Shown here: positions 20,283 to 44,570 of the stretch, piece by piece
How positions within the stretch are numbered: position 1 is the first letter of the stretch
How the letters are laid out: every line of letters starts with the position of its first letter
Source of the DNA: Obrimoposthia wandeli
Taxonomy: Eukaryota
Direction: 5' to 3'
NCBI GenBank assembly: GCA_977020255.1
Contig: CDROCS010006357.1
Coordinates: forward strand, 62,001-126,000
DNA length: 64,000 nucleotides
Notes under the pieces: model-generated
The model's input: the letters and a program-made list of their open reading frames with translations, nothing else
The model's database searches: none
What the model was told of the DNA's origin: nothing
Program-made: the position numbers and the translations under genes

Positions 20283-20284
20283 AA

Positions 20285-23022: not shown

Positions 23023-23922
23023 TTGTTGACTAAGGCTTTGAATATAATGGTTATAAAAAGCATTATTACAATATTAGCACTAGTGCTTTCTTGTACCTTA
23101 TGTGCAGGTGATAATGTTTGGATATCACCATTGGATAGTAGTACTTGGGTATTCTCCGGTAATAAAACTGAGTGTGTTATCTCTCATGATGTAGAGGGTT
23201 TTGGTGTTGTTAAAATAATCACCGAAGCAGGAATGGGTACACGCTTAGAAATAAAATCGAAAGAACTAAAAAATCTAACAGATGATCATGCTGTTGATTC
23301 AATGCCAGCATTCTGGGCTGTTGAAAAAGTAAACAATATAAACTATCAAGGTAACGTTTCTTTTTCTTTATTGACTAGCGAACTTGTTTTTAATAATGCT
23401 GATGAAATTTTTAAGCGTTTAGACCAAGGCGAATGGATTAAAATTGGTTTAAATAGGGGGAGTCAAAAAAATGACGCCGTTGTGATTTCTAATGTAAATT
23501 TCGAATTACCAGCAAAACGATTTCTATCGTGTAAAGACGATTTGATATCACTTAATTATCAGCAGGTTAGATCTTCTGAATTTTATTACCCATCAGGTTC
23601 AACGTTAGTTTCTAAATCAGAGGTTAGAACGGCATACGGTATAGCTGAGTATGTGAAAGTTATTCGATCAATTAACAAAGTCTTGATTGATGGTTATTCA
23701 GACAGCCAAGGACGATCGACGGTTAACTTACGAATTTCACGTGAGCGGGCTGAAGAAGTGGCTGCACTACTGATTGAATTTGGTGTTCCCCAGAAAATGA
23801 TTCAAATTCGCTCTCATGGCGATCGTTATCCAATCGCTGATAACGCGCTAGCGGATGGGCGAAAGAAAAATCGACGCGTCACGGTACGTTTAATCAAGAA
23901 CTCTGCGGCAGGTGTGCAATGA
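23023..23922 (+). CDS. motY: Lateral stator-associated protein MotY (LafY-type) with C-terminal OmpA/peptidoglycan-binding domain
   Basis: Signal peptide; [20 protein letters not shown] MotY-N-like region; GYSDSQG...ISRERA...HGDRYP...GRKKNRRV OmpA domain. Start is TTG 23023 or ATG 23047. Confidence 0.85.
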
Positions 23923-25358
23923 TAAATGAGTGGCAAGTGTTGATGTTTCAACCGCAAAGCTCTGCGCTTGAACAAGCATTATCAACGGGGAAAGCAAAGG
24001 GTTACAATTTGACACGTACTACCTGCGTGTTTGATTGCCTAAATTTGGTGGCTCAAAAAGAGTGGGACTTATTACTCTTACCGGCTTGCTTGAGTGACGG
24101 TACTGAAGCCGCTGACATGATTAAATTGTTTCAGCGTCATGGGTATCATGGCGCAGTTGTCGTGTTGTCTGAACTTCACAATTTTTCGGAAGTTACCCGA
24201 GCTTTACAACAGGGAGCGATGGATTACCTGTTGATCCCTTTTGGTCATACTCATTTAGCACAACTTGTCCAACGTTTGGTACAGACGCAGCAGCAACAAA
24301 ACATGGTTGCTGAATCGTGCAAAAGTAAGCAGATGTTTCAATTGGCACAACGTGTTGCGCAGACGGATGCCTCTGTTCTGATCACTGGTGAAAGTGGTAG
24401 TGGCAAAGAAGTATTGGCACAGTTCATTCATGACTCATCTCCGCGTGCTGCAGGGCCGTTCATTGCCATCAATTGCGCTGCTATTCCAGAAACTATGATT
24501 GAATCAATTTTATTTGGCCATACCAAAGGGGCGTTTACCGGAGCCACTTCAGCACAGGCGGGTAAATTAGAGGCTGCCAATGGCGGTACTCTTTTACTGG
24601 ATGAAATCGGTGAGTTGCCACTTGCCATGCAAACCAAATTATTAAGGGTGTTGCAGGAACGTGAAGTTGAGCGTTTAGGTAGTCATCAAAAAATTAAGCT
24701 AGATATCCATGTGTTAGCTGCAACCAATAAAGACTTAGAAAAAGCTATTGCTGATGGTTGCTTCCGGGCTGACCTGTATTACCGTCTGAATGTTTTTCCT
24801 CTTCACTGCGCGTCATTGAAAGATCGCAAAGACGATATTATTCCGTTAGCAAACAACTTACTTCGTCGTCATATGCCGCCAGGGCAGGCGAGTACGGAGT
24901 TTACCAAAGCGGCCCAAAAGGTATTGTGTAGCTACGATTGGCCGGGCAATGTCCGCGAATTGGAAAATGTTATTCAGCGCGCCTTAGTCATGAGCCGTGG
25001 TTGTTTGATCCGTGAAGAAGATTTGATGTTACCAACGTTCGAAAATATAACGAGCGAACGGAGCACGGTCGTTCCGACATCAGCCTCATTGAATGTGGTA
25101 AAAACTACTAGAAAATCAACGACCTCTTGCACTAAGCCCAACTTACAAAAAAGCCGTAAGCTTGCTGAATTTGACACTATCATTGAGACTCTGCGTCGTT
25201 TTGATGGTCATCGCAGCAAGACGGCAGAAGAGCTGGGTGTATCAACCCGGGCACTACGCTATAAAATTCAAACCATGCGCGAGCAAGGGCTAGATATCGA
25301 AAAAATCCTAACGGGGCAAAATGCAAATTTAGTCCCAACGAACTTTAATTTTTCCTAA
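23919..25358 (+). CDS. lafK: sigma54-dependent lateral flagellar master activator LafK (bEBP)
   Basis: GESGSGKE Walker A, GAFTGA, LLDEIGE Walker [19 protein letters not shown], Fis-type HTH ([18 protein letters not shown]); degenerate N-terminal receiver domain. Confidence 0.9.
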
Positions 25359-25378
25359 CCGTTATTACGAGAGCTGTC

Positions 25379-25723: not shown

Positions 25724-25736
25724 CGGGAACGTTTAA

Positions 25737-28413: not shown

Positions 28414-28415
28414 TT

Positions 28416-29117: not shown

Positions 29118-30450
29118 TTTATTCCAAGAGCTAAATGCTCGCCTATCTTCAGCTGTTGAGCATATGCCTGATGTGCCTATTGCCCGAACCTATGGGCGAT
29201 TAACACGCATGGCTGGGTTAACATTGGAAGCGGTTGGTTGCCGTTTGTGTACCGGTCAACGGTGTATGATTGAAACCGATCATGGCACCTTAGTGGAAGC
29301 TGAAGTGGTTGGTTTTGATCGTAACGCATCGGTATTGATGCCGATCCGCCATACCACCGGGTTACGGCCTGGTAGTCGAGTATTTCCATTACACGGTGAC
29401 AGCAAAATTAATGTTGGTTATAGCATGCTTGGCCGAGTCTTAAATGGCTTAGGCGAGCCATTAGATAGTCGTGGTCCTATTACTGCTGATCAGCGAATAA
29501 ACCTGCAAGGTGAAACGATTAACCCATTGCAACGCTTACCTATTTCAACTCAGTTGGATGTTGGCGTCCGTGTCATTAATGGTATGCTCAGCGTCGGCAA
29601 AGGCCAGCGCATGGGGTTGTTTGCCGGCAGTGGTGTCGGTAAGAGTGTGCTGTTAGGCATGATGACTCGCAACACCACTGCAGAAATTACCGTGGTTGGA
29701 TTAATAGGTGAGCGTGGTCGAGAAGTGCGTGAGTTTATTGAGCATTCATTAGGCCCTGAAGGGATGAAGAATGCAGTAGTGATAGCATCGCCTGCCGATG
29801 ATCCACCATTAATGCGTTTGCGTGCTGCAATGCTCTGTCATCGTATTGCCGAGTTTTTCCGCGACCAAGGCCATGATGTGTTGTTGCTTATGGATTCGTT
29901 AACCCGTTATGCCCAAGCTCAGCGTGAAATCGCCTTGGCTGTTGGTGAGCCACCAGCAACCAAAGGGTATCCGCCTTCGGTGTTTAGCATGCTGCCTCAA
30001 CTTGTTGAGCGTGCGGGTAATGGTGCTACGGAAAAAGGCTCTATTACCGCGTTTTATACCGTGCTATCAGAAGGCGATGATCAACAAGACCCGATAGCTG
30101 ATGCCGCCCGAGCTATTTTGGACGGTCACATCGTATTGAACCGTGAATTAGCCGAACAAGGTCATTACCCAGCCATTGATATTGAACAATCAATCAGTCG
30201 AGCAATGCCGCAAGTGGTTACTCCTGAGCAGTTACAAAAAGCGCAACAAGTAAAGCAGTTGTATGCCCGTTATCGCCAGGTACAAGATTTAATCTCGCTA
30301 GGCGGATACCAGCAAGGGCAAGATCAAAATCTCGATATGGCAGTGCATTACTACCCTGAAATCTGTGGTTTCCTGCAGCAAGGAATGAATGATCGGATAC
30401 TTCTTGCAGATAGTCAGCAGCAATTAATGCAGCTGATCGGAGGGCAATAA
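29110..30450 (+). CDS. fliI: Flagellar export ATPase FliI (LfiI)
   Basis: AGSGVGKS Walker A, LIGERGREVREF, LLMDSLTRYAQAQRE, GYPPSVF, DGHIVL. Confidence 0.97.
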   Translation: MHDLFQELNARLSSAVEHMPDVPIARTYGRLTRMAGLTLEAVGCRLCTGQRCMIETDHGTLVEAEVVGFDRNASVLMPIRHTTGLRPGSRVFPLHGDSKINVGYSMLGRVLNGLGEPLDSRGPITADQRINLQGETINPLQRLPISTQLDVGVRVINGMLSVGKGQRMGLFAGSGVGKSVLLGMMTRNTTAEITVVGLIGERGREVREFIEHSLGPEGMKNAVVIASPADDPPLMRLRAAMLCHRIAEFFRDQGHDVLLLMDSLTRYAQAQREIALAVGEPPATKGYPPSVFSMLPQLVERAGNGATEKGSITAFYTVLSEGDDQQDPIADAARAILDGHIVLNRELAEQGHYPAIDIEQSISRAMPQVVTPEQLQKAQQVKQLYARYRQVQDLISLGGYQQGQDQNLDMAVHYYPEICGFLQQGMNDRILLADSQQQLMQLIGGQ

Positions 30451-30453
30451 CCG

Positions 30454-30888
30454 ATGATGAAGCGAGTCAAAATCGTTCAAAGTTGGCGCGATCAACAGCA
30501 GCGACAATTTAACAAATTGCAACAGCAACAGGGACAGATCAATCAGCAAATGAATGCCCATCAACAACGCTTATCGTTGCTGGAAGATTTATCGGGGCAG
30601 TATTCTGTCGCCAGTGGTAGTCAGGCTTCGGCTTTATTATTGAAAGGCATAGGTCGTTTCCGGCATCAACTCGATAACCTGACTAACCTTCAGCGTCAAG
30701 AACTTGCGTTATCGCAGGTTGAATTACGCAGTATGAATGAGCGCTTGGTCAAGCAGCATTGCCAAGTCCAAATGGGCAATAAGCTCATTGATAAGCGGTT
30801 AACGAAAATTCAAAATCAGCATGATAAGCAAGAGCAAAAAGTGCTCGATGAATTATCGATAATCCGTTTCTTTCATCGCCGTTCTTGA
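30454..30888 (+). CDS. fliJ: Flagellar export chaperone FliJ (LfiJ)
   Basis: Gln-rich coiled coil of ~144 aa directly after fliI, ending EQKVLDEL. Confidence 0.8.
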   Translation: MMKRVKIVQSWRDQQQRQFNKLQQQQGQINQQMNAHQQRLSLLEDLSGQYSVASGSQASALLLKGIGRFRHQLDNLTNLQRQELALSQVELRSMNERLVKQHCQVQMGNKLIDKRLTKIQNQHDKQEQKVLDELSIIRFFHRRS

Positions 30889-30919: not shown

Positions 30920-31354
30920 TTAAATGTTTGGGCTATAGCTGTATTGTTGTTGTGGTTTTAGCAGTTTATCCATCATTTGTTTTTGTTGTGCCAATAAACG
31001 GCCATTAGCATTATTTTTTTCTTGGCATTGCAGCGTAACGTCATACAGTTGCTGCCATAATTGGCGAGCTTGCTGACTATATTGGGTAGGTAAAGCGGCG
31101 AGTAAACACTTCATTCCTGCGTCATCGGCTGTCATACCTAATGCGATAAGGTGCTCACCACGGTGTTGTGCATGGTTATTTAATTGCTGCATTAACAGCT
31201 GAAGTTCGACGTTATGTGTTAGCAAGGCCTTACTGTCACGATTTTGTAATAGCAGTTGTTGATGCTTAAGTTGTTGAGCCAGCTGTTGATAGCTTTTCAC
31301 ATCCTGTGCTAGCTCAGTGATGAGTGCTTTAACCAGTTCAGCTTGAGTCGCCAT
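30920..31354 (-). CDS. flgN: Flagellar chaperone FlgN (LfgN)
   Basis: Helical; CQEKNNANGRLL motif; follows flgM. Confidence 0.8.
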   Translation of the reverse strand: MATQAELVKALITELAQDVKSYQQLAQQLKHQQLLLQNRDSKALLTHNVELQLLMQQLNNHAQHRGEHLIALGMTADDAGMKCLLAALPTQYSQQARQLWQQLYDVTLQCQEKNNANGRLLAQQKQMMDKLLKPQQQYSYSPNI

Positions 31355-31392
31355 GCATTGTTACCTTTATTAACGTTTATATTGTGTCGTTA

Positions 31393-31674
31393 TTATTCGT
31401 TGTCTTGGTAAAAATCGAGCATGCTACCAGCCAGATCATCAAGGTTAATTGATACCTTTCCCGTACTGAGCATTGCTTTCATTTCAGCCACTTTATTCAT
31501 ATCGACATCACTGGTTTTATCCATTGATTCTTTTGCCGACTGTAGCGATTTTAACTCGCTGCTTAGCTCAACCTGTGCGACATTTGAAGTGCTAGGTTTT
31601 GCTGTTTTGTTCGTCACTTCCGGTGGTAAAACCATCGGAAGTGAATGCGATATTTTTCCAATCATAGGGTTCAC
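31393..31674 (-). CDS. flgM: Anti-sigma28 factor FlgM (LfgM)
   Basis: VELSSELK...DVDMNKVAEMKAMLSTGKVSINLDDLAGSML, typical FlgM C-terminus. Confidence 0.85.
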   Translation of the reverse strand: MNPMIGKISHSLPMVLPPEVTNKTAKPSTSNVAQVELSSELKSLQSAKESMDKTSDVDMNKVAEMKAMLSTGKVSINLDDLAGSMLDFYQDNE

Positions 31675-31703
31675 ATAAAACAGTAGTTGCGGTTATAGAG
31701 ATA

Positions 31704-31730
31704 AGAGCGACCAGAGATAGAAACTCTTAA
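31704..31730 (-). promoter_or_regulatory. Candidate LafS (sigma28-type) promoter of flgMN
   Basis: Minus strand TTAAG-N14-GTCGCTCT; the same TTAAG-N14-GTCGC spacing occurs upstream of lafA. Confidence 0.55.
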
Positions 31731-31767
31731 ATTATTTTTCATTGCACAAAGAGGGAGAATACTAGCA

Positions 31768-32487
31768 TCAAAAGTTGGTTCGGACTTTTTGAGGCCCTAC
31801 AATGATGGCATAAATTTCTTTTTGGGAAGACAGATTACGTACTCGAATCGAATCACCTTTCACGCCTGACTCCAAAGCTACCCCTTTCATTGTTGCATTC
31901 ATTTTGCCAAATTTAGCCTCAATAAGCACTCCATCATTACGTTGCACGAGTTTCGGCAGTTCGACCATTCTTGGGCTAATGATTTTACCTGCAACAATCT
32001 TTCGTCGGCTCGTTAGTCCGGTCAGCGCTTGTTTTGAGGTGAAATACCCATGGCGTAAATACGCCACATCACTGCGTTTGAGACTGAGCATTGCTGGGGT
32101 GATTTTTTGGTGGCGATTGAAGGTGTTTTTGGCCACAACTAATTGGCGATAAATCGCTACCTTTGCCTTTGCCCGAGCTTTCCAATAAGTCGGTTTCTGG
32201 CATTCCAATGTGATGGTTAATCGCCCTGCAGGTTGTTGTGGATCGCTCAAAGATTGGCTAATCGGCGTATCACAAGCGGGAATATCGGATAGCGGCTGCA
32301 AGGTTATTTTGTAATCTTGGCTACCTAATGTTGCGGCATAACGACTAACATTTTTTTTCAGATAACGCTTAACCGCGCGTTCGGTCTTGGCGGTTGCTTC
32401 AGTGACTTGCTCGATGTGGCTGGTGGCAGCTTGCACTGTAGACGTGAGGAAACCGCCGCTCATGATTAAGCTTGCAATGAGTACCAT
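31768..32487 (-). CDS. flgA: P-ring assembly chaperone FlgA (LfgA)
   Basis: SAF domain; LVQRNDGVLI...GVALESGVKGDSIRVRNLSSQK. Signal peptide follows ATG 32487 (ORF track starts at upstream TTG 32529). Confidence 0.88.
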   Translation of the reverse strand: MVLIASLIMSGGFLTSTVQAATSHIEQVTEATAKTERAVKRYLKKNVSRYAATLGSQDYKITLQPLSDIPACDTPISQSLSDPQQPAGRLTITLECQKPTYWKARAKAKVAIYRQLVVAKNTFNRHQKITPAMLSLKRSDVAYLRHGYFTSKQALTGLTSRRKIVAGKIISPRMVELPKLVQRNDGVLIEAKFGKMNATMKGVALESGVKGDSIRVRNLSSQKEIYAIIVGPQKVRTNF

Positions 32488-32494
32488 TTCCGAT

Positions 32495-32511
32495 CGGAAG
32501 TGACACTTCCG
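32495..32511. promoter_or_regulatory. Palindrome CGGAAGT-N3-ACTTCCG, candidate LafK enhancer site for the flgB promoter
   Basis: CGGAAGTGACACTTCCG; centre 71 bp upstream of the sigma54 TGG at 32574. A twin site exists at 44477. Confidence 0.6.
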
Positions 32512-32573
32512 CTTTATTGTTAGCCGCACGTTTTTTGTACCGTTAAGTTGCTAATATTAAACAAGTAAAGTAT

Positions 32574-32589
32574 TGGCATAATTATTGCT
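32574..32589 (+). promoter_or_regulatory. sigma54 (-24/-12) promoter of the flgB-L operon
   Basis: TGGCAT-AATTA-TTGCT matches TGGCAC-N5-TTGCW, 38 nt upstream of the flgB ATG. Confidence 0.85.
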
Positions 32590-32627
32590 TATTACTGGTT
32601 GAATTTCACCATCATGCGGTTTGTAGT

Positions 32628-33005
32628 ATGGCAATAAATTTTGAGCAAGCATTAGGGGTACACCCTAATACATTGGCGTTTCGAACACAACGCGCAAAAG
32701 TACTGGCAAGTAACCTCGCCAATGTCGATACCCCTAATTATAAGGCTCGTGATATCAGTTTTGAAGATGCGATGAGCCAAATCGCGGGTGAAGCAAGAGC
32801 GAAACATCAAGCTCGCTTTCGCTCACAATCACCAAAAACTGAATTGCTGTACCGCAATCCACAACAGCCAAGTCAAGATGGTAATACGGTCGAACTGGGT
32901 ACTGAACAAGCAAAATTTGCCTCAAATGCGATGGCGTTTGAAACCAGTATGAGCTTTTTGAATATGAAGATTAGCGGCTTAAAGCAGGCCATTAAAGGAC
33001 AGTAA
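32628..33005 (+). CDS. flgB: Proximal rod protein FlgB (LfgB)
   Basis: RAKVLASNLANVDTPNYKARD, DGNTVEL. Confidence 0.95.
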   Translation: MAINFEQALGVHPNTLAFRTQRAKVLASNLANVDTPNYKARDISFEDAMSQIAGEARAKHQARFRSQSPKTELLYRNPQQPSQDGNTVELGTEQAKFASNAMAFETSMSFLNMKISGLKQAIKGQ

Positions 33006-33010
33006 TTACG

Positions 33011-33427
33011 ATGTCATTTTCCACGATATACGACATTGCAGGTTCTGCGATGTCGGCTCAAACCATTCGCCTGAACACCGTGGCAAGTAACTTAGCCAAT
33101 GCCGATGTTGTTTCTGGCTCTGATAAGACGGGCTATCACGCCAAACGTCCTATTTTTTCGACCGTGATGACCGATATGGACAGTCAGGTACCCGGTGCGA
33201 AAGTACAGGTTGATGATGTCATTGAAAGTACCGAGCCGCTGCGTCGCCGTTATGAACCCAATCACCCGAAAGCGAATGACGAGGGTTATGTGTTTCATTC
33301 TACGGTGAATGTAGTTGAAGAAATGGCTGACATGATGGCCGCCTCACGTAACTTTGAAACCAACGTTAATGTGATGAGCCGAGCACGCAGCATGCAACAA
33401 AGTATTTTACGTCTAGGCCAAAGTTAG
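33011..33427 (+). CDS. flgC: Proximal rod protein FlgC (LfgC)
   Basis: RLNTVASNLANAD, YEPNHPKAND.GYV, VNVVEEMADMMAASRNFE. Confidence 0.95.
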   Translation: MSFSTIYDIAGSAMSAQTIRLNTVASNLANADVVSGSDKTGYHAKRPIFSTVMTDMDSQVPGAKVQVDDVIESTEPLRRRYEPNHPKANDEGYVFHSTVNVVEEMADMMAASRNFETNVNVMSRARSMQQSILRLGQS

Positions 33428-33436
33428 GAGCCATAA

Positions 33437-34111
33437 ATGAGTTTGCCCCACGTTAATACCGTTAACCAATACAGCCATGGTTCGACTGAGCAAAAAAACC
33501 AGCAAGTGGCTGGTAATGGCATGAACCCATCAAGTAATGAATTTCTTACCATGATGGTGGCACAGATCCAAAACCAGAACCCCCTTGAGCCAGCGGATGG
33601 TACGCAGTACCTCACCCAGCTTGGCATGATGTCGGCGGTGGAAAGTTTGGAGGGCGTCAAAACGGGCATGATGAACATGAACATCGGCATTACTAACCTT
33701 GAAATGCTTCAAGCCACCAATTTAGTGGGCAAGAAAGTATTGATGGAAGCAAATCAAGGCGTGGATGTTTCAGAAGGTCAAATCATTGATGGTCGTGTGC
33801 AGTTTGATCAGCCGGCAGATACCGCCAAAGTCATGGTTTATGACGAAGAAGGTAAAGTGGTTGATGAAATTAAATTAGGGCCACAGGCTACTGGCATGGC
33901 TGAATTTAAAATTGATGGCGACAAGCTAGGAAAGGGTACTTATACCTTTGAAGTGGTTGCTGAAAAGGGTGATGACGCCTGGACCCAGAAAATGATGATT
34001 GCTGCCGACGTTGAATCGGTCAACATTCCTGCTGATGGTGGCACGATCATGCTGAGCTTAAAAGGCCTTGGCAAGATGTCTATGTTCGACATGCGTGAAA
34101 TTACAGCTTAA
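33437..34111 (+). CDS. flgD: Hook capping protein FlgD (LfgD)
   Basis: EFLTMMVAQIQNQNPLEP.D..QYLTQL. Confidence 0.93.
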   Translation: MSLPHVNTVNQYSHGSTEQKNQQVAGNGMNPSSNEFLTMMVAQIQNQNPLEPADGTQYLTQLGMMSAVESLEGVKTGMMNMNIGITNLEMLQATNLVGKKVLMEANQGVDVSEGQIIDGRVQFDQPADTAKVMVYDEEGKVVDEIKLGPQATGMAEFKIDGDKLGKGTYTFEVVAEKGDDAWTQKMMIAADVESVNIPADGGTIMLSLKGLGKMSMFDMREITA

Positions 34112-34173
34112 AGCAGTAATTACAGCTCAAAACCATTAGAAAATTAAAATAATTCAAAAAGGTAACAACGGCT

Positions 34174-35373
34174 ATGTCTATGAATATCGGTATGAGTGGT
34201 CTGATAGCGACCTCTGAACAAATGAACTCTATCAGCCACAATATTGCGAACGTTGGTACGGCTGGCTATAAATCGTCACGTACTGAGTTCCAAGATATCT
34301 ATGCGCCTGAATTTGGTGGCGGTGAGATGAACGGTGTCGAAGTTGCCGCTATTCGTCAGAGCTTCAAAAATGGCACCACCACCCCGACAGGCCGTAACGG
34401 TGATTTGGCAATTAACGGTGAAGGTTTCTTCATGGTTGAAAATAATGGCCAAAATATGTTTACCCGTAATGGTGTATTTAACCTTGATAAAGATGGCAAT
34501 TTAGTCGCAAGTGACGGCAGCCATCTGCAAGGTTATGGCGTGTCTGGCACTGGTCAAATTCAAACCGGTACGATTACTGACCTCACGGTTGAGACGGGTG
34601 ATATGCCGGCGCGAAGTTCAACAAAAGTGAATATGGAGGTGAATTTAGATGCGAATTCCTCTGCCATTGATCCCAAAACACCATTTGATCCAGAAAACCC
34701 TTCGACATTTACCTCAAGTGCAACCACGACGGTATATGACTCGTTAGGTGCCGAGCATGAAGTGACGCAGTATTACGTTAAAACCGCAGATAACACATGG
34801 GATGTTAACTATGTTGTTGACGGTGATAAAGCAAGTGCTCAGAAAACAACATTGGCCTTTGATGATAAGGGTAAATTAACGACAAATGATACTTTTGATT
34901 TGGCGTTCATCCCCCAAAATGGTTCAGCGGCACAGACCATTAAGTTTGATGCAGCAGAAACTACTCAGTTTGGTAAGGAATTTGCCATTACCAAAAACAG
35001 CCAAGATGGTCACGCACCCGGTCAGGTTGCAGGTTGGTATTTTGAAGGCGATGGCCGCGTATTTGCTCGTTATTCTAACGGCCAGACTAAAGTGCAAGGC
35101 CAAGTAGCTCTTGCACGATTCCCGAATCAAGAAGGTTTGCAGCAAGCGGGTAATACCCGTTGGACCGAAAGCTTCTCTTCTGGTGCAGCACTGGTGGGCG
35201 CGGCAGGTACCGGTCAGCTTGGTAATGTTCGTACTGGTATGTATGAAAACTCGAACGTTGATTTGAGTAGTGAAATGGTCAATTTGATGTCGGCACAAAG
35301 TAACTATCAAGCGAATGCCAAAACCATCAAAGTGGCTCAGGAAATGACTCAAATTCTGTTCCAGAACCTGTAA
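34174..35373 (+). CDS. flgE: Hook protein FlgE (LfgE)
   Basis: GMSGL...ISHNIANVGTAGYKS, DLAINGEGFF, YDSLG, ENSNVDLSSEMVNLM. Confidence 0.95.
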   Translation: MSMNIGMSGLIATSEQMNSISHNIANVGTAGYKSSRTEFQDIYAPEFGGGEMNGVEVAAIRQSFKNGTTTPTGRNGDLAINGEGFFMVENNGQNMFTRNGVFNLDKDGNLVASDGSHLQGYGVSGTGQIQTGTITDLTVETGDMPARSSTKVNMEVNLDANSSAIDPKTPFDPENPSTFTSSATTTVYDSLGAEHEVTQYYVKTADNTWDVNYVVDGDKASAQKTTLAFDDKGKLTTNDTFDLAFIPQNGSAAQTIKFDAAETTQFGKEFAITKNSQDGHAPGQVAGWYFEGDGRVFARYSNGQTKVQGQVALARFPNQEGLQQAGNTRWTESFSSGAALVGAAGTGQLGNVRTGMYENSNVDLSSEMVNLMSAQSNYQANAKTIKVAQEMTQILFQNL

Positions 35374-35387
35374 TCGGAGCCTAGCAA

Positions 35388-36122
35388 ATGGATAAGATGT
35401 TATTTACTGCCATGTCGGGCGCGAGTCGCGTAATGATGGCGCAGCAGGTGCATGCTAATAATCTGGCTAACGTCAACACTGCAGGTTTTCGTGCCGATAT
35501 TGAACAAGCTGAAAGTGTGGCAGTAAAAGGTAATGGTTTTGAGACCCGAACTCTGGTCGCAGCGCGAGCGGGTGGTACCGACTTTTCACAGGGCGCCTTA
35601 CAGCATACTGATAATCCATTTGATATGGCGATTCGTGGTGACGGTTTTTTTGCGGTTGAAGCCGGAGACAATGACGAAGCGTATACCCGTACAGGTAACT
35701 TCCACTTAGACGCTGAAGGCACATTGCTGTTGGGCGACCGCCCCGTATTGGGCACGGGTGGCCCTATAGTGATCCCTGAATATCAACAGTTAGATATCGG
35801 TGCTGATGGCACCATTTCTATCGTACCGTCAGGTAGCAGCTTGGTTCAGGAAGTGGGTCAATTAAAGCTGGTGAAGCCAGATTTAGCGAATTTGCATAAA
35901 AGCGAAGATGGTTTATTCCGTGTCGCTGGGCAAGGGGGTCAGGCTGAAGCGGATGAGAACGTAACAGTGGCCTCTGGTTACATTGAAACCAGTAACGTTA
36001 ATGCGGTTGAATCGATGATTAACAACATGTCTTTGTCTCGAAATTTTGAATTTCAAATCAAAATGATGAAAACCGCGGAAGACTTAGCGAGAGCGGGTAA
36101 TCAAATTGTTCGCGGTAGCTAA
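35388..36122 (+). CDS. flgF: Proximal rod protein FlgF (LfgF)
   Basis: HANNLANVNTAGFRAD, DMAIRGDGFFAV, YIETSNVNAVESM. Confidence 0.94.
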   Translation: MDKMLFTAMSGASRVMMAQQVHANNLANVNTAGFRADIEQAESVAVKGNGFETRTLVAARAGGTDFSQGALQHTDNPFDMAIRGDGFFAVEAGDNDEAYTRTGNFHLDAEGTLLLGDRPVLGTGGPIVIPEYQQLDIGADGTISIVPSGSSLVQEVGQLKLVKPDLANLHKSEDGLFRVAGQGGQAEADENVTVASGYIETSNVNAVESMINNMSLSRNFEFQIKMMKTAEDLARAGNQIVRGS

Positions 36123-36132
36123 TTCATCTCCG

Positions 36133-36195
36133 TCAATAAAGCCGTTCGTCGATAAAACAGTTCATCGATAAAACAGTTCGTAGCGAAAATAGTAC
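36133..36195 (+). repeat. Tandem 16-bp-period repeat (about 4 units) between flgF and flgG
   Basis: TCAATAAAGCCGTTC (36133), TCGATAAAACAGTTC (36149), TCGATAAAACAGTTC (36165), degenerate TAGCGAAAATAGTAC (36181). Confidence 0.75.
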
Positions 36196-36213
36196 TTTTC
36201 AGGAGTAACACAC

Positions 36214-36999
36214 ATGCACGCAGCTCTTTGGGTCAGTAAAACTGGTCTGGCGGCACAAGATACCCAAATGCAGGTTATTTCAAATAACCTAGCAAACGTT
36301 AATACGGTTGGCTTTAAACAAGATCGCGCTGTATTTGAAGATCTGTTTTATCAAATGAAGAAACAGCCAGGTGCAATGACCGATCAGCAAAATGAGAACC
36401 CAGGTGGTCTTCAGTTAGGTAACGGCGTACGTGTTGTTGGTACCCAAAAGCTGATGAAAACGGGGGCTTACCAAAATACCGAGCAAGCAACCGATTTAGC
36501 GGTGCTGGGTTCTGGTTTTTTCCAAATTGAACTGGCAGATGGTAATACCGGCTATACCCGTAATGGTCAGTTCCACCGCAATTCAGAAGGTATGATGGTG
36601 ACGGCTGCGGGTTTACCGTTAATGCCAAACATCGAAATCCCAGAAAATGCGACTAACTTCAGTGTGGGTACCGATGGCATGGTTACCATCTCAACTGCTG
36701 ATGATCCACAACCGCAGGAAATCGGTCAGATTACGTTAGCTAACTTTGCCAACGCTGCGGGCTTACAGTCGCTAGGTGGTAACTTGTTTAAAGAAACTGG
36801 CGCATCGGGCGCACCGATTGAAGGTGTGGGTGGTGAAGATGGATTAGGTCAAATTAGTCAGTTTAGCCTTGAAGGTTCAAACGTTAACGTTGTTGAAGAA
36901 ATGGTTAATATGATCACGACTCAACGTGCGTATGAAATGAATGCCAAAGTGGTCTCAAGTGCCGATCAAATGCTGAAATTTGTCAGTCAATCAATGTGA
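36214..36999 (+). CDS. flgG: Distal rod protein FlgG (LfgG)
   Basis: ISNNLANVNTVGFK, YTRNGQF, LEGSNVNVVEEMVNMITTQRAYEMNAKV. Confidence 0.96.
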   Translation: MHAALWVSKTGLAAQDTQMQVISNNLANVNTVGFKQDRAVFEDLFYQMKKQPGAMTDQQNENPGGLQLGNGVRVVGTQKLMKTGAYQNTEQATDLAVLGSGFFQIELADGNTGYTRNGQFHRNSEGMMVTAAGLPLMPNIEIPENATNFSVGTDGMVTISTADDPQPQEIGQITLANFANAAGLQSLGGNLFKETGASGAPIEGVGGEDGLGQISQFSLEGSNVNVVEEMVNMITTQRAYEMNAKVVSSADQMLKFVSQSM

Positions 37000-37009
37000 G
37001 TATAGCGGC

Positions 37010-37669
37010 ATGTTACGCGTTATTTTTTTACTCGGTATGTTATTTCTGACGGGTTGTGCGCCAGTTTCAAGCTTTGTTGAGGTGCAGCCGAAAGAGAATG
37101 TGCCTGCGATGGAGCTTCCTGAATATATTATTGATCCTGACGGCAGTTTATTCAGTGCCAACTATAGCATGGCACTGTTTCAGGATCGCCGGGCCTTTCG
37201 TATCGGAGATATCTTAACGGTTGATCTCTCTGAGCAGACTCGCTCCAGTAAGAAAGCAGATACCAGTTATGGTAAAGACAGTAATCTCGGGATTGCCGCT
37301 CCAATGATTGCTGGCAAATTACAACCGAAAGGGCAATTTTCTCTAGATGCAGAGCGTGACTTTAAAGGGTCTGCATCAAGCTCACAGCAAAACTCACTGT
37401 CGGGCAGTATTACCGTGATGGTGGTAGACGTGTTGCCTAATGGAGTACTGCGGATCCGTGGTGAAAAATGGCTGAAGCTCAATCAAGGCGATGAATATAT
37501 TCGCTTATCAGGTCTCGTGCGTGTCGATGATATCGACGGTACGAACCGCGTGTCTTCCCAACGTTTGGGTGATGCCCGAATTACCTATTCTGGCCGAGGT
37601 GCACTCGCGGATGCGAATGAATCTGGCTGGTTATCTCGATTCTTTAATAGCTCTTGGTTCCCAATTTAA
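37010..37669 (+). CDS. flgH: L-ring lipoprotein FlgH (LfgH)
   Basis: Lipobox FLTGC after ATG 37010; [36 protein letters not shown]. Confidence 0.94.
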
Positions 37670-38778
37670 TGGTTATAAAAAAACACCTTATTGGTTTACT
37701 CCTTATTCTGTGTCCGCTATCGCTTCAAGCGCAACCATTATTCAGTGTGGTTGATATTCAGGGAATTCGTGAGAACCAACTCGTTGGTTATGGTTTAGTG
37801 GTGGGCTTAAGTGGCACCGGGGACAAAAGTCAGACCAAATTCACCTCACAGTCGGTTAAAAACATGCTGAGCCAGTTTGGTGTTCAGTTACCGGCAAATG
37901 TCGATCCAAAATTAAAGAACGTCGCAGCGGTGGCGGTTAATGCCACTCTTCCAGCCCTTGCCAGTAAAGGTCAGTCACTGGATATCACCGTGTTATCGAT
38001 TGGTGATGCGAAAAGCTTGCGCGGCGGTACGTTGTTGCTTACTCCGCTAAAAGGGGCCGATGGTCAGATCTATGCCATTGCACAAGGTAACTTAGTTGTC
38101 GGTGGTGTAGTCGCGCAAGGCAATAGTGGTAGCGGTATTACCATTAATATTCCCACCGCGGGTTTAATTCCCAATGGCGGTATTATTGAGCGTGAAATTA
38201 CATCTTCGTTTTTAACCGCTTCAACGGTTGTTCTTAACTTGAAGAAACCTGGGTTTAACACCGCCAGAAATATCGAAAAGGGGATCAACGAACTCTTTGG
38301 TCCCGATGTTGCTTTGGCGCAAAGCCATGCACGTATTAATGTTCGTGCCCCGCATGATCCGAGTCAGCGGGTGACATTTTTGGCGATGCTTGAAAATTTA
38401 GATATTGAAACTGGCCCTCGCCCAGCACGGGTAGTGTTTAATGCCCGAACCGGTACCATCGTGGTGGGGAAAAATGTCAAAGTACATACCGCAGCAGTAA
38501 GCCACGGTAACCTGACAGTGAGTGTGATGGAAAGCTTCAATGTTAGCCAACCTAATCCTTTTGGCCGTGGTAATACAGCGGTAACACCTGAATCGGATGT
38601 GTCGATCGATCAAGAGCGCGGCAAAGTGTTTATCTGGCCTGACAGCGATGAAGGTACCTCGCTGCAAACGATTGTTGATGCAGTTAATAGCCTTGGCGCT
38701 ACCCCCAACGATCTAATGGCTATTTTAATCGCATTAGATGAAGCGGGTGCACTCGATGGTGAGTTGGTGGTGTTGTAA
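37669..38778 (+). CDS. flgI: P-ring protein FlgI (LfgI)
   Basis: [45 protein letters not shown]; probable start ATG 37669. Confidence 0.95.
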
Positions 38779-39302
38779 TGAAAATTATTGATAGTGAAAA
38801 CAACTCCACACTGTATAACGACTTAACCAGCATTCAGAACATCAAAGCCAACTCTAATAAGCAAGAAGCGTTAGAACAGGCCGCAGGGCAGTTTGAAGCG
38901 GTGTTTTTACAAACGGTATTGAAGCACATGCGTCAGGCATCAGATGCGATGCAAGATGAAGAAGACGGTTTATTTAATAGTCGTCAGCAAAAGTTTTATC
39001 GTTCGATGCATGACAGCCAGATTGCGGTTGAAATGAGCCAGCAGCAGAGCTTAGGTATTGCAGACATGTTGATTAAGCAACTGGGTCAACATGAAGCATT
39101 TAAGCCACAGCAACAACTGGTCGCTGTTAATCTACAGGGTGAGGCGCTGCCTTCAGGGGCCCATTTACCGTCAGCGGCGGTGAGTCCGGTTATTAATGAA
39201 ACAGATCGTCCTTACAGTAAAGCATCGCAGCCACATTGGTGGCGAGATAGCACGCCCTTGTCTCTGCAACTTAATAACCATTTTGATGACGAAGAATTAT
39301 GA
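38778..39302 (+). CDS. flgJ: Rod-capping protein FlgJ (LfgJ), N-terminal domain only (no muramidase)
   Basis: ALEQAAGQFEAVFLQTVLKHMR...MHDSQIA...LGIADMLIKQL; only 174 aa. Confidence 0.88.
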   Translation: MKIIDSENNSTLYNDLTSIQNIKANSNKQEALEQAAGQFEAVFLQTVLKHMRQASDAMQDEEDGLFNSRQQKFYRSMHDSQIAVEMSQQQSLGIADMLIKQLGQHEAFKPQQQLVAVNLQGEALPSGAHLPSAAVSPVINETDRPYSKASQPHWWRDSTPLSLQLNNHFDDEEL

Positions 39303-40705
39303 GCTTAATTAATATCGGTTTATCAGGCTTGAATGCCTCCAATGCGGGGCTTTCAGTCACATCACATAACATTGCTAATGCGATGACGCCCGGTTTCAGC
39401 CGCCAGCGTGTCGGCTTTGGTGCGCAGATGGATAATGGCTCTCAAGGCGCAGGCGTCGGTGTCAGCAGTGTTGAGCGTATGGCCGATAATTATCTTAATC
39501 AGCAGATCTATAAACAGAACGGCTCATGGGGATTCAACAAAATCAGCTCTCAATATATGCAGAAAACCGAGAGCTTACTCAATAATGCCAGCACCAATAT
39601 TAATACCGGTCTCGATCGTTTTTATGCGGCATTAAGTGAAGCGTCAGCCGCTCCACAAGATATCGCATTTCGTCAGACCATTGTTAGTCAAAGCGAATCG
39701 ATGGTACAGCGTTTCAATAACCTGAGCTCGCAGCTTGAGGGTCAGACCAAGCAAATAAGCGGGCAGTTAGATGCCACCGTCTCTGAAGCTAATACCTTAA
39801 TGGCGGGCATTGCCAGCATGAACGAGAGTATTCGTGATGCAGGTGCCAGTGGTAAAAGCATGACTGACTTGCTTGATGCGAGAGACGAATCTGTTCGCCA
39901 GCTATCGGCACTGGTAGATGTGAATACGACTTACAATGACGACGGTACAATTAGCCTCACCTTAGACAAAGGGCAACCGTTAGTCAGTGGTAGCAGTGCC
40001 AGCGAGCTGAAAAAAGACAATGATGGTTCGTTATCATTACAACGTGGTAATGGCACTTTAGTGCTCGATGATAATATCGGCGGCACCATTGGTGGTTTGG
40101 TTGACTATCGTGATGGCGAGCTTAACGAGCTGAAACGTGAATTAGATGTAATGGCATACAGTTTTGCTACTCAGTTTAATGAAGCACACCAAGCGGGTTT
40201 TGATCTTAATGGTGATCCGGGTAAGGCGGTATTTGGTGGAGTTGATAGCATTGACGGTGCCGCTGAAAATTTAACGCTATTGGTTGATGATCCTAATCAA
40301 CTGGCTTTTGCCTCTAAGGCTGGCGAGCCTGGCAACAGTGAAAATCTTCAGCAGCTGATTGATCTGAAAAATGCGCCAGTAACGATTGATCAGGCCAAAC
40401 TCAGTATTAAAGATGCTGAAACCTACCAGATAGCTATCGCGAAATTGGAGGGTAAATCCCTCAATAACGGTTACACCGGTTTAACTGGTGACTGGGCGAT
40501 CAAAACCGCACAAATTGAGGCTGATACTGAAGCTTCAAAAGCATTGGCGGGGCAAGCTCAGGGTGAACGCGACAGCATTAGCGGGGTAAACCTTGATGAA
40601 GAAGCCGCGAGCATCATGATGTATACCCAGATGTATCAGGCCAATGCAAAAGTAATTTCAACTGCGCAACAGTTGTTTGATGTCACCCTATCGATGTTTC
40701 GTTAA
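39299..40705 (+). CDS. flgK: Hook-filament junction protein FlgK (LfgK)
   Basis: GLSGLNAS...TSHNIANAMTPGFSRQ, LLDARDE, SGVNLDEEAASIM.YTQMYQANAKVI. Confidence 0.95.
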   Translation: MSLINIGLSGLNASNAGLSVTSHNIANAMTPGFSRQRVGFGAQMDNGSQGAGVGVSSVERMADNYLNQQIYKQNGSWGFNKISSQYMQKTESLLNNASTNINTGLDRFYAALSEASAAPQDIAFRQTIVSQSESMVQRFNNLSSQLEGQTKQISGQLDATVSEANTLMAGIASMNESIRDAGASGKSMTDLLDARDESVRQLSALVDVNTTYNDDGTISLTLDKGQPLVSGSSASELKKDNDGSLSLQRGNGTLVLDDNIGGTIGGLVDYRDGELNELKRELDVMAYSFATQFNEAHQAGFDLNGDPGKAVFGGVDSIDGAAENLTLLVDDPNQLAFASKAGEPGNSENLQQLIDLKNAPVTIDQAKLSIKDAETYQIAIAKLEGKSLNNGYTGLTGDWAIKTAQIEADTEASKALAGQAQGERDSISGVNLDEEAASIMMYTQMYQANAKVISTAQQLFDVTLSMFR

Positions 40706-40732
40706 TCGGTATTAAAGTAAAAGGAAAGAAAG

Positions 40733-41647
40733 ATGCGTTTAAGTACAGCTCAGCTTAATACCGTCATGCTAACCAGCATGCAAAGTTCGACAACCGGGGT
40801 GAACAAATCATTTATGCAGATGAACTCGGGCGAAAAGATGCTCAAACCATCTGATGATCCGCTGGGTTCGGTACAGTTAATGATGCTGGATCGCGAACAG
40901 GCTAATATCGGTCAGTTCCAGAAGAACATTACCAACCTTGAAGCGCAACTGGGTAAAACTGAATCACATCTCGATGCGTCAAACAACGCAGTATTGCGCG
41001 TACAAGAGTTGGTCACCAGTGTACTGAATGCCAGTAACAGTACAGTGGAAGGGCGTGAAGCTATCGCGACCGAATTAGAATCGCTGCTTGATCAGTTAAC
41101 CGATACTGCCAACAGTAAAAACCCCAATGGTGATTACATTTTTGCGGGCACCAAGACAGATACCCAGCCAATCACGAAAGATTCGGCAACCGGTAAGTAT
41201 GTTTACAATGGCAATGGTGATAAAAGGATGGTAAAAGTGGCTGAATCGATGAGTATTCCAGCCAACCAGACCGCAGAAGATATTTTCTTTAACGGTGGAA
41301 GTGATATATTCAACGCCCTTGATAAAACCATCGCTGATTTACGTAATCCGGCAATTGAAGGTGCCAGCTTAACGGCCAGCGTAACAGCGGCTCAAAGTGA
41401 TATTGATGGCACATTAAAATCAATCAACCAGATCTGGACAGACGTCGGTGGCCAGCGTAATGCCTTGACCATGGTGCAAGGTTCTCATGCAGATAACAAA
41501 CTGGTGAACAGTAAGTTGATAGGTGATGTAAAAGATTTGGACTACAGTGAAGCTATTTTAGAATTAAACTCTCAAATGGCCGCGTTGCAAGCCACCCAGA
41601 TGACCTACAGCAAAGTCCAGAATTTATCCCTGTTTAAATTGCTATAA
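40733..41647 (+). CDS. flgL: Hook-filament junction protein FlgL (LfgL)
   Basis: SGEKMLKPSDDP, GDYIFAG, DLDYSEAI, AALQATQMTYSKVQNLSLFKLL. Confidence 0.94.
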   Translation: MRLSTAQLNTVMLTSMQSSTTGVNKSFMQMNSGEKMLKPSDDPLGSVQLMMLDREQANIGQFQKNITNLEAQLGKTESHLDASNNAVLRVQELVTSVLNASNSTVEGREAIATELESLLDQLTDTANSKNPNGDYIFAGTKTDTQPITKDSATGKYVYNGNGDKRMVKVAESMSIPANQTAEDIFFNGGSDIFNALDKTIADLRNPAIEGASLTASVTAAQSDIDGTLKSINQIWTDVGGQRNALTMVQGSHADNKLVNSKLIGDVKDLDYSEAILELNSQMAALQATQMTYSKVQNLSLFKLL

Positions 41648-41702
41648 CTGGGGTCACCCGAATGAGCTAGAACAGGCTCTGCCAACAGAAGATGAGGCCA
41701 CC

Positions 41703-42788
41703 TTGGTTAATCATATAACCTCCAGTCATAGTACGCTGCGCAGTAGTGATAGTACCCAAACCGATCGCATTGCGAAGCAACAGCCCGTTGCTGCTGTCGC
41801 GAAAGTTGTAGAAAAAAAATCCAAACAAGAACAACAGCACTCGGCGACAAGCGGTAAGAAACGCAGTTTATTGGTGCAAACTAGCGAGGCGCACCAACAA
41901 GCTGCGCAAGCACAAAGTGCACAAAAAGCCCTGCAAAAAGCCAATGATATGCTGGGCCAATTACGCCAGTTAGCGCGCCGTTCGCTGAATACGCAAGAAG
42001 GTAAAAAAGATCAGCTGCAGCAGTCGCTTCACCAGTTGAAAAGTAAACTGACTAAGCTGACCCGTGAAGCCAAATATGAAGGCGAGCCGGTACTGCATCA
42101 CGATCTTACTCCACGCTTGAGTGGTGAACAGCACAGAGAAGAATTTTCATTTAAAGGCATGCGCTTAAATACCTTGCGCCAACAAGATGAAGTTTTACGC
42201 TTTCAGTTTGACTCTGGTGTACCAAGTTCAGTTCGTAGCCGTATTGATAATGATGAAAACAATCATGAGATTGCCGAGAAGCTTAATAAAGCATTTGCTC
42301 CACGCAGTATTCAGGTAGAAGTCGATAAATACGGTGATTTGGCCTTCAATGTACCCAAGGCGCAGTGGCCAGAAATCAAAAAAGGTATCTGGATGTCTGG
42401 TGGCGGGCAAATTTTACCGGCAGGTAATCCGATAAAAGCCAAGCTTGAACAACATGATAAAACCGCGGTCGAACCGCAAGACTTAGAATTTGGTAAACCA
42501 CAATCAACCCGCAAGGCGCTGGCTGATATTGAACGTATGATGCAAAAAATACAGCAATCATTGGTACATATCAGCAAAGTACAAAGTCAGGTGAGTCAAG
42601 ATTTAGAACGGTTGGTAGCAACCAATATGATGAAGTCTGGAGTAATCAACGACGAAGGGGTCATTGAATCTAGCTGGTTAGAAGCGCCGAATAATGTCTC
42701 TTTGCAGTTGCTTGATAACGCGGTACCGACCTTGCTCGCTCAGGCCAATGCCTCGCGCCACAATGTGGTGGCATTGCTAGAGCCCTAG
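41703..42788 (+). CDS. Divergent flagellin-like protein of unknown function
   Basis: Segment AQSAQKALQKANDMLGQLRQLARRS resembles the flagellin N-terminal helix (AQTAEG.L.E....LQR.R.LA.QS). C-terminus LLAQANASRHNVVALLE resembles the flagellin end (VL.QANQ.P..V..LL). Starts at TTG. Confidence 0.6.
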   Translation: MVNHITSSHSTLRSSDSTQTDRIAKQQPVAAVAKVVEKKSKQEQQHSATSGKKRSLLVQTSEAHQQAAQAQSAQKALQKANDMLGQLRQLARRSLNTQEGKKDQLQQSLHQLKSKLTKLTREAKYEGEPVLHHDLTPRLSGEQHREEFSFKGMRLNTLRQQDEVLRFQFDSGVPSSVRSRIDNDENNHEIAEKLNKAFAPRSIQVEVDKYGDLAFNVPKAQWPEIKKGIWMSGGGQILPAGNPIKAKLEQHDKTAVEPQDLEFGKPQSTRKALADIERMMQKIQQSLVHISKVQSQVSQDLERLVATNMMKSGVINDEGVIESSWLEAPNNVSLQLLDNAVPTLLAQANASRHNVVALLEP

Positions 42789-42843
42789 CCATTATTTACC
42801 TGACGTCTACTTACGTCCTTATCTACGACATCAGTCATGACAT

Positions 42844-42870
42844 AAAAAAGCGAGCTTCGGCTCGCTTTTT
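42844..42870 (+). terminator. Intrinsic terminator after the flagellin-like gene
   Basis: AAAAAAGCGAGC-TTCG-GCTCGCTTTTT. Confidence 0.85.
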
Positions 42871-43019
42871 GCTTTTTAGGGCTAGTCAACTAGACAGACA
42901 AAAAACGTCGTTAGATAGTCGTCAGCCATTTGCAGATAAGCATTCAGCCTTGAACCTTGAACTTTGGCAGTAATGTCACTCTTACTTAGGTTCATTATCA
43001 ATAAAGTGAGAAAAAGTGT

Positions 43020-43046
43020 TTAAGCAATTAAAAAATGGGTCGCATT
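43020..43046 (+). promoter_or_regulatory. Candidate LafS (sigma28-type) promoter of lafA
   Basis: TTAAG-N14-GTCGCATT about 100 nt upstream of the lafA ATG; motif shared with the flgM upstream region. Confidence 0.55.
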
Positions 43047-43149
43047 AGTAAGGTAACGACAGAGAAGTAATGTCTTCATCGCCCCGATAGAGATGTTGCT
43101 TGTTTAATTAAAAATAACATTTTTATACCGAATTAAAGGAAGACCTATC

Positions 43150-44427
43150 ATGGCGATGACCATCAACACTAACTTTGCATCAATGAATGCACAGCGTAAC
43201 CTGCAAACTACGCAGGGTTCACTAAACGGTTCACTAGAGCGTCTGTCTACTGGCTTGCGTATTAACAGCGCAAAAGATGATGCGGCGGGTATGCAAATTG
43301 CTAACCGTATGACTTCTCAAGTTAACGGCCTGAAAGTCGCGCAACGTAACGCTAACGATGGCATCTCTATGGCGCAAACCGCTGAAGGTTCTCTGCAAGA
43401 ATTCACCAACATCCTGCAGCGTCAGCGTGATCTGGCTGTTCAGTCTAAAAATGGTTCTAACTCAGATTCAGACCGTACAGCACTGAATAAAGAATTCCAA
43501 GCGCTGACCAAAGAGCTGGATCGTATCGTAGATACGACTACTTTCGGTAAAGGCGAGAAGCTGTTTGACAAGCTGTCTACTGGTATTGATTTCCAGGTGG
43601 GTGCTGATGTTGATACCGTTATGTTGAAAGGCAGCGTAGCTGATGCGACAGTTGCTACGGATGCATCGAGTGCTACAACATCTGATATTGGGGCTGCACT
43701 AAGCGGTCTGTTGGGCGGCGATAAATCTGCTGCTGAACTGGCACTAATGACTACGCAAATCGCTGCGTTAGCCGCTACAGATGTAAAAGCGGATGAAGCA
43801 CTGGCTGCTGGTGGTGTGGATGCGTTTGCTGCGCTGGGCATTACTGAAACTAAAGACGGTGCCGCAATCAGTGCAACAACTAAGTATGGTGAGCTGGATC
43901 TTCCGAGTGATATTTCAAAGCAGCTAACGGATCTGGGTACGCTAGTAACAGCGGCTACTGCCTATGCTGGTTCAGGTAGCACAGCAACGCCTCAAGCTAA
44001 GACCTTAGTTCTTGCAGACCCTATGATTACAGCAGTGAATGATTATGCTAAAGCGGGTGGTAGTGCTAATTCCGGTAACACCATCAATGTTAAAGTTGAC
44101 TCAGGAGACCTAGATACAACGAATATCGGTGCGATTGATACAGCCGTTGGTGCTGGCATGGCGGTAAGTCAAATTGACACAATGATTGAAAACGTTGGCT
44201 CTATCCAGGCTGACCTAGGTGCAACCCAAAACCGCTTCGGTTCTACTATCAACAACCTTGGCAACATCGCAGAGAACATGTCTGTTGCTAAAGGCCGTAT
44301 CATGGATGCAGACATCGCGGCAGAATCTGCCAACATGACTAAGCAGAATACTATGATGCAAGCGGGTATCACGGTGCTTTCACAAGCAAACCAGATGCCA
44401 AGCATGGTTTCTCAGCTACTACGTTAA
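43150..44427 (+). CDS. lafA: Lateral flagellin LafA
   Basis: [63 protein letters not shown]; large Ala/Thr/Gly-rich variable domain. Confidence 0.95.
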
Positions 44428-44474
44428 TTTTCGTAGTCAGCCTGTGGTAAGCCACGGTTTATCACACCTACCTG

Positions 44475-44504
44475 AGCGGAAGTATTACTTCCGCTTTCTT
44501 TTTA
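44475..44504 (+). terminator. Intrinsic terminator after lafA whose stem is also the CGGAAGT-N3-ACTTCCG palindrome
   Basis: AGCGGAAGTA-T-TACTTCCGCT followed by TTCTTTTTT; centre 70 bp upstream of the sigma54 TGG at 44555. Confidence 0.65.
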
Positions 44505-44554
44505 TCTGGCCTTTATGAAACTGACCACGCCCTTTAAAATCAATAAATTAAATG

Positions 44555-44570
44555 TGGTATGTTTTTTGCT
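44555..44570 (+). promoter_or_regulatory. sigma54 (-24/-12) promoter of the fliD-motB(-fliB) operon
   Basis: TGGTAT-GTTTT-TTGCT matches TGGYRY-N5-TTGCW. Confidence 0.8.

Follow-up and report, generated by a model that had tools for sequence, protein, structure and literature searches.

In this work, we analyzed a 64,000-nt stretch of DNA (contig CDROCS010006357.1, positions 62,001 to 126,000 of the forward strand, GenBank assembly GCA_977020255.1 from Obrimoposthia wandeli; hereafter the window), which holds a complete lateral (Flag-2 type) flagellar cluster of a Photobacterium near P. profundum, its FliD being 96% identical to PBPRA0042. A palindrome, cGGAAR-N5-YTTCCg, stands upstream of the two sigma-54 middle-class promoters of this cluster, and sequence comparison leads us to regard it as the likely upstream activator sequence of LafK at both. 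In Vibrio, Aeromonas and Photobacterium, and in the Flag-2 islands of Enterobacterales, LafK serves as master activator of the lateral (swarming) flagella. The elements concerned are the following.

Site 1, 32487..32512 (palindrome proper 32495-32511): TTTCCG-AT-CGGAAGT-GAC-ACTTCCG-C, three half-sites; proposed LafK upstream activator sequence of the flgB operon.
Weak site resembling that of integration host factor (IHF), 32544..32556, minus strand: between site 1 and the flgB promoter, two mismatches to YAANNNNTTGATW.
flgB promoter, 32574..32589, plus strand: sigma-54 promoter of flgBCDEFGHIJKL, TGGCAT-N5-TTGCT, 71 bp downstream of the site 1 centre.
Site 2, 44474..44506 (palindrome proper 44477-44493), plus strand: 10-bp-stem hairpin and T tract; proposed to terminate lafA and to serve the fliD operon as LafK upstream activator sequence.
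IHF consensus AATCAATAAATTA (WATCAANNNNTTR), 44538..44550, plus strand: between site 2 and the fliD promoter.
fliD promoter, 44555..44570, plus strand: sigma-54 promoter for fliD, fliS and following genes, fliA_L and motAB (the fliD operon); the site 2 centre lies 70 bp upstream.
lafK, 23919..25358, plus strand: degenerate receiver, sigma-54 AAA+ domain at aa 130-295 with GAFTGA, Fis-type HTH_8 at aa 415-451; proposed binder of both sites.

The strict form of the palindrome, CGGAAGT-N3-ACTTCCG, occurs exactly twice in the window (0 expected), each time with perfect arms of 7+7 bases. For the core CGGAAG-N5-CTTCCG, two exact matches were found against none in 100 dinucleotide-preserving shuffles, and a tolerance of up to three mismatches added two weak matches, both within coding sequence. 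An earlier reading of this DNA made without database searches (the sequence-only reading) had located the same two copies, had noticed no other full copy in the window and had placed the TGG of the flgB promoter 71 bp, and that of the fliD promoter 70 bp, past the respective centre, all of which was reproduced here. Site 1 has in addition a third half-site, TTTCCG (32487-32492), 2 nt before the palindrome. We also noticed the 8-mers of site 1 in swapped order (CACTTCCG, 9 nt, CGGAAGTG) inside flgM at 31617-31641. This inverted pair was rejected as a third site: beyond the window only P. frigidiphilum keeps it, P. indicum and others do not, and chance is its likely origin.

No other intergenic -24/-12 match of the flagellar cluster is as good as the two promoters, TGGCATAATTATTGCT (32574) and TGGTATGTTTTTTGCT (44555), and no further sigma-54 promoter was found in the 740-bp fliM/motY spacer or between other genes of the cluster. 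The earlier statement that only these two are good matches therefore holds for intergenic DNA, but not throughout: a match of equal quality, TGGCATCTGGTTTGCT, lies on the minus strand at 44385-44400, antisense in the lafA 3' end and 85 bp from the site 2 centre. It is composed of conserved flagellin C-terminal codons and is thus probably fortuitous, though it may give rise to an antisense lafA transcript.

Orthologous clusters were sought with FlgI, and eight were obtained, from seven Photobacterium species and Parasalinivibrio latis (FlgI 77-98% identical). Both palindromes are kept in all eight. When the spacers of these clusters and the window were aligned (nine genomes), 19 of the 26 columns of site 1 were invariant against 23/125 (18%) in the remaining spacer, and 18 of the 19 columns of site 2 against 35/258 (14%). 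Changes in site 1 are rare and confined to the innermost arm position and the loop, and a T tract is conserved at site 2 but not at site 1. The GGCA and TGCT blocks of the flgB promoter are kept in the nine genomes, and the close-relative alignment also contains the IHF-consensus block between site 2 and the fliD promoter; at the place aligned with the weak site at 32544..32556, P. sagamiensis has a perfect IHF match. The distance from site 1 to its promoter is 70-71 bp in all close relatives, and that from site 2 is 68-70 bp, or 50-52 bp after a 20-bp deletion.

Farther afield, a recognisable version with the core GGAAR-N5-YTTCC stands before the corresponding promoters in E. coli Flag-2 and Vibrio, and in Aeromonas at flgB only. 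In Grimontia hollisae, the distance is 70 bp for site 1 and 50 bp for site 2. At E. coli Flag-2 fliD, TTTCCG-N6-CGGAAA-N5-TTTCCG occurs 48 bp ahead of the promoter, and the stretch in between contains a perfect IHF site. The palindrome follows a repetitive extragenic palindromic (REP) element and a hairpin that terminates lafA separately; at flgB, a copy with two mismatches occupies the flgA 5' end, 59 bp before the promoter. A Vibrio sp. of the parahaemolyticus type has TGGAAA-N5-CTTCCG at 59 bp before fliD_L, again with a perfect IHF match at the equivalent position and a separate lafA terminator, and flgB_L of V. parahaemolyticus is preceded at 49 bp by a degenerate version with three half-sites. 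Aeromonas sobria has TTTCCA-N3-GGGAAGT-N3-ACTTCCT 73 bp before the flgB promoter. Altogether, 25 sites in 14 genomes have their centre 48-73 bp before the TGG, or about -75 to -100 from the start. The sequence-only reading had staked its proposal on positional conservation in homologous Flag-2 clusters, and such conservation extends from Photobacterium to E. coli. In Ferrimonas region 2, whose flgB and fliD regions lie outside what was searched, no motif was found.

Several observations were made in passing in these distant clusters. The flgB_L promoter of E. coli FDAARGOS_944 (L085 17549-17564) reads TGACAC instead of TGGCAC, its GG having decayed to GA; the LafK of this strain (L085 2584-3561) has 325 aa and lacks the receiver domain, and an insertion sequence element interrupts the flagellin-modification genes, so that this Flag-2 looks like a decaying island with an intact fliD control region. 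The lateral sigma-54 promoters of Vibrio and Aeromonas (L083, L086, L089) have TTGA or TTGT rather than TTGC as the -12 element. In the Vibrio sp., a perfect CGGAAA-N5-CTTCCG within the motY_L 5' end (L089 2039-2055), about 480 bp upstream of the divergent fliM_L, may be an additional LafK site and is listed as a candidate, and a run of about eight copies of GAAGCTA lies between lafA and fliD_L (L089 11068-11124). In Aeromonas sobria, an orphan gene between flgL and lafA contains TGGAAGTGACACTTCCG (L090 17744-17760), near-identical to site 1; it has no properly spaced sigma-54 site, and one-mismatch matches are expected by chance at such a search depth.

The distance between palindrome and promoter provides another line of evidence. 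We scanned metagenomes with the pattern CGGAAR-N5-YTTCCG, 36-66 nt, TGGYAY-N5-TTGC and obtained 120 matches, 47 of them at lateral flagellar genes: in 35 a FlgB or FliD homologue begins just past the -12 element, and 12 more adjoin homologues of lafA, fliD or flgA/flgB, mostly cases in which the contig ended or the downstream gene match was too weak for placing the start. Two matches are near LafK-like activators. The flagellar matches have spacings of 48-51, 59-63 and 69-71 bp only, about one helical turn apart. At a period of 10.5 bp, the Rayleigh R was 0.81 for the 20 distinct flagellar variants and 0.76 for the eight lineage-level spacings from individual genomes, against 0.13 for the 58 non-flagellar variants, which spread uniformly over 45-75 bp; the contrast with this internal control is clear. 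A second coherent regulon among the non-flagellar matches was considered and rejected, as the proteins encoded downstream (an Ig-like protein, an Na/H exchanger, a glycosyltransferase, a collagen-like protein and a Mur ligase) are unrelated; with even spacing and unrelated genes, these matches are best read as chance background. In keeping with the earlier judgement that matching arms and phasing at two loci are unlikely to be chance, the element is non-random, phased and deeply conserved in position.

The element stays at the fliD promoter where lafA has its own terminator, which ties it to the sigma-54 promoters and not to the lafA 3' end. It moves in whole helical turns only, and the flgB copy, whose fold is not significant, has nothing to terminate. 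Together, these traits are the signature of an enhancer for a sigma-54 activator. As the sequence-only reading stated, LafK is encoded in the cluster, where it is the single enhancer-binding protein, and 14 orthologues, ranging from Photobacterium to E. coli, all have the same recognition helix (..RALRYK..). The motif and lafK co-occur, including in E. coli islands without polar FlaK/FlrC. The Plesiomonas lateral cluster lacks lafK (PMC11242183), and there the flgB sigma-54 promoter is kept, but no such palindrome was found in 20 kb. Since LafK is the sole activator of the cluster, is inherited with the motif and has an invariant recognition helix, it is the obvious binder. An 18-nt inverted repeat (GTGCCATTAATTAGTCAA and its complement) overlaps the fliE_L sigma-54 promoter of Plesiomonas (L082 2275-2330) and may be the site of a regulator replacing LafK.

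From these observations we infer the following sequence of events. A LafK dimer would dock on the dyad through its C-terminal Fis-type helix-turn-helix (HTH), and LafK would then assemble as the active AAA+ ring. A bend introduced by IHF in the 50-70 bp spacer would bring this ring to the closed sigma-54 holoenzyme, and ATP hydrolysis would open the promoter; looping by IHF and ATP-driven opening are proposed by analogy with NtrC, NifA and PspF. In this way one promoter would drive the flgB operon (rod and hook) and the other the fliD operon, with the sigma-28 gene fliA_L and motAB among its genes. The palindrome would have to face the promoter, and its distance would therefore change by roughly whole helical turns only. 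The copy next to fliD appears, in the Photobacterium/Grimontia lineage, to have merged with the lafA terminator, so that the 17 bp would also form an RNA stem. The flgB-proximal copy lies within the first codons of the divergent flgA.

Some points weigh against assigning the palindrome to LafK. The literature searched, which did not include the key 2003 V. parahaemolyticus paper, yielded no published LafK site and no binding, footprint, chromatin immunoprecipitation or reporter data. There is one full dyad per promoter, with the third half-site at site 1, which is unusual for enhancers of bacterial enhancer-binding proteins (bEBPs); classical ones frequently have at least two dyads. An IHF-like site often lies in the spacer, but the exact WATCAANNNNTTR is present at 9 of the 25 sites (including site 2 of the window, E. 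coli and Vibrio), the others having near matches, and before Aeromonas fliD neither a clear palindrome copy nor a sigma-54 consensus was found. The p-values for spacing are indicative only, because the spacing variants are phylogenetically non-independent. A terminator at site 2 would be conserved anyway, so the conservation of site 2 alone is no evidence for protein binding. Finally, the related HTH of the polar regulators FlaK/FlrC could share the site or compete for it.

Four alternatives were weighed, and even taken together they are unlikely. The one that survives best, improbable in our view, is that a regulator other than LafK binds the palindrome, either by cross-talk from FlaK/FlrC or as a repressor or co-activator gating both class-2 promoters. 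What the observations show is limited to the DNA element and its tie to the sigma-54 promoters. LafK-FlaK cross-activation has been reported in V. parahaemolyticus (cited in PMC11242183), and FlaK is proposed, pending validation, to take over lateral gene control in Plesiomonas (PMC11242183). However, the motif follows lafK clusters across families, including the horizontally spread E. coli Flag-2 that has no polar FlaK/FlrC, and is missing from the lafK-less Plesiomonas cluster, and wherever the motif persists the recognition helix of LafK is unchanged.

Next comes the possibility, which we rate as very improbable, that both copies are merely RNA hairpins (terminators or mRNA stabilisers) and that their closeness to sigma-54 promoters is incidental. 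Both were indeed picked up by a terminator scan. Site 2 forms a G+C-rich 10-bp stem with a 3-nt loop, followed by a T tract kept in 10 genomes; it lies 49 nt past the stop codon of the co-directional lafA, and the region has a folding z-score of -4.4. It has all the features of an intrinsic terminator, and the same bases very probably serve as the RNA stem that ends lafA transcripts and as the proposed protein site. Grimontia hollisae carries an additional palindrome copy (L084 12718-12734) after the first of two tandem lafA genes, with a compensatory change of the innermost stem pair from T..A to C..G; it has no sigma-54 promoter behind it, and is therefore a duplicated terminator carried along by the tandem lafA duplication. 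Site 1, in contrast, lacks a co-directional upstream gene, a conserved T tract and a significant fold on either strand (z-scores -0.8 and -1.2). The stem of a terminator may vary in sequence, yet identical arms are seen at both loci and in different genera; the palindrome still precedes the fliD promoter in E. coli and the Vibrio sp., where lafA has a separate terminator; and helical phasing to a promoter is meaningless for a terminator. A second hairpin of the lafA 3' untranslated region (3' UTR), at 44443-44466 upstream of site 2, is conserved among the closest relatives only.

Cross-talk between RNAs, in which a lafA 3'-UTR fragment with the palindrome pairs with its identical, self-complementary counterpart in the first codons of flgA mRNA and tunes FlgA synthesis, is highly unlikely. 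Site 2 does lie in the lafA 3' UTR and site 1 in the translation start region of flgA, and flagellin 3' UTRs of Vibrio polar systems are known to give rise to small RNAs (bioRxiv 10.64898/2026.08.28.747715). But pairing within a strong terminator stem occupies the arms of site 2, in E. coli and the Vibrio sp. the lafA terminator comes before the palindrome, and promoter phasing is left unexplained. No expression evidence was found: the sole RNA run matching the stretch, a sediment metatranscriptome, has contigs from 90-95% relatives, which show no transcript starts or ends and are uninformative on termination and start sites.

The least credible alternative is that site 1 (flgA codons about 6-14 if the start is GTG 32529) is conserved only as the positively charged start of the FlgA signal peptide and resembles site 2 by coincidence: in all lineages examined, the flgA frame stays open across the palindrome and has a start codon ahead of it, and the peptide R-K-x-x-F-(R/L), R-K-x-x-F-R in its basic form, recurs even in E. 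coli, but the synonymous positions are frozen (always CGG, AAG and TTC) beside almost unalignable FlgA codons, a signal-peptide n-region requires charge only, and the same 14 specified bases recur in the non-coding site 2 (chance about 2e-4 in 64 kb).

The proposal that the palindrome is a LafK enhancer, already made in the sequence-only reading, therefore gains support from conservation, phasing and co-occurrence with lafK, with LafK as the probable binder. That reading was incomplete in that site 2 also resembles a lafA terminator and site 1 overlaps the flgA 5' end; it had remarked neither on these features (the T tract and the flgA codons) nor on the third half-site. A further reading, rather improbable to us, would make the 17-bp element dual: as DNA, the LafK enhancer of flgB and fliD, and as RNA, the lafA terminator or 3'-UTR hairpin, with feedback from late to middle genes either by heavy sigma-28-driven lafA transcription into the enhancer or by pairing of a lafA 3'-UTR fragment with the identical palindrome in the first flgA codons. 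If this were true, the flagellar hierarchy would have a built-in late-to-middle feedback loop.

The surrounding cluster is laid out as follows.

fliM to flhA, 15986-22280, minus strand.
motY_L, lafK and fliE to fliJ, 23023-30888.
flgN, flgM and flgA, 30920-32529, minus strand.
flgA, 31768..32529, minus strand: divergent from flgB; its 5' end includes site 1; alternative start ATG 32488.
flgB to flgL, 32628-41647.
lafA, lateral flagellin, 43150..44427, plus strand: preceded by a flagellin-like orphan.
fliD, fliS and following genes, fliA_L and motAB, from 44690.

On the minus strand at 32581-32609, a sigma-70-like promoter match (GTGAAA, 17 nt, AATAAT) is directed at flgA, back to back and overlapping with the flgB sigma-54 promoter; if it is real, site 1 would be traversed by flgA transcription. 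The AT-rich 740-bp spacer from fliM to motY-lafK contains two 48-nt direct repeats (22360-22407 and 22459-22506), 88% alike and 99 bp apart, each with an inner palindrome AATTGAAT..ATTCAATT. These repeats (22360-22506) could be operators for whatever turns lafK on.

Upstream activator sequences combined with an IHF bend are known for NtrC, NifA and PspF at glnHp2, nifH and pspA. The arrangement described here resembles them in having a dyad that precedes the start site of a -24/-12 promoter by about 75-100 bp, often an IHF-like match in the spacer, an apparent dependence on the face of the helix and, as the probable cognate activator, an AAA+ protein whose C-terminus carries a Fis-type HTH. 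It differs in its GGAAR half-site and in a single dyad (with the extra flgB half-site) instead of tandem ones, and binding in the present case is proposed from sequence. A further parallel is Caulobacter FlbD, a flagellar sigma-54 activator that binds palindromic ftr elements. These are located some 100 bp away from middle and late flagellar promoters, and IHF sits in between. The NCBIfam FlbD model gives LafK a good score. The lateral palindrome differs in sequence from ftr. An ftr element can overlap the control region of a neighbouring gene and repress that gene, and by analogy repression of flgA from site 1 is a possibility. FleQ, FlrA and FlrC are the flagellar master or middle bEBPs of the polar flagella of Pseudomonas and Vibrio; LafK belongs to the same protein family and would likewise control flgB- and fliD-type operons, whereas the FleQ box is unrelated in sequence and the reported FlrC sites lie downstream of their promoters, not upstream as the palindromes do here. 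With rho-independent terminators, site 2 shares a stem, a loop and a U tract, placed directly behind a gene of high expression, but its stem sequence is frozen across genera and repeated at site 1, which is not a terminator.

Therefore, the motif with its spacing rule is very probably, as far as comparison of genomes can tell, a previously undescribed site of a known regulator, of the conventional bEBP upstream activator type, and the general picture of sigma-54 activation is left unchanged by it. A LafK box with a spacing of about 50, 60 or 70 bp would make the direct LafK regulon predictable from sequence, would supply probes and mutations for binding and reporter assays, and would offer a check on functional control regions in silent Flag-2 islands. 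At the lafA-fliD junction, it would also represent an economical design in which terminator and enhancer share the same bases.

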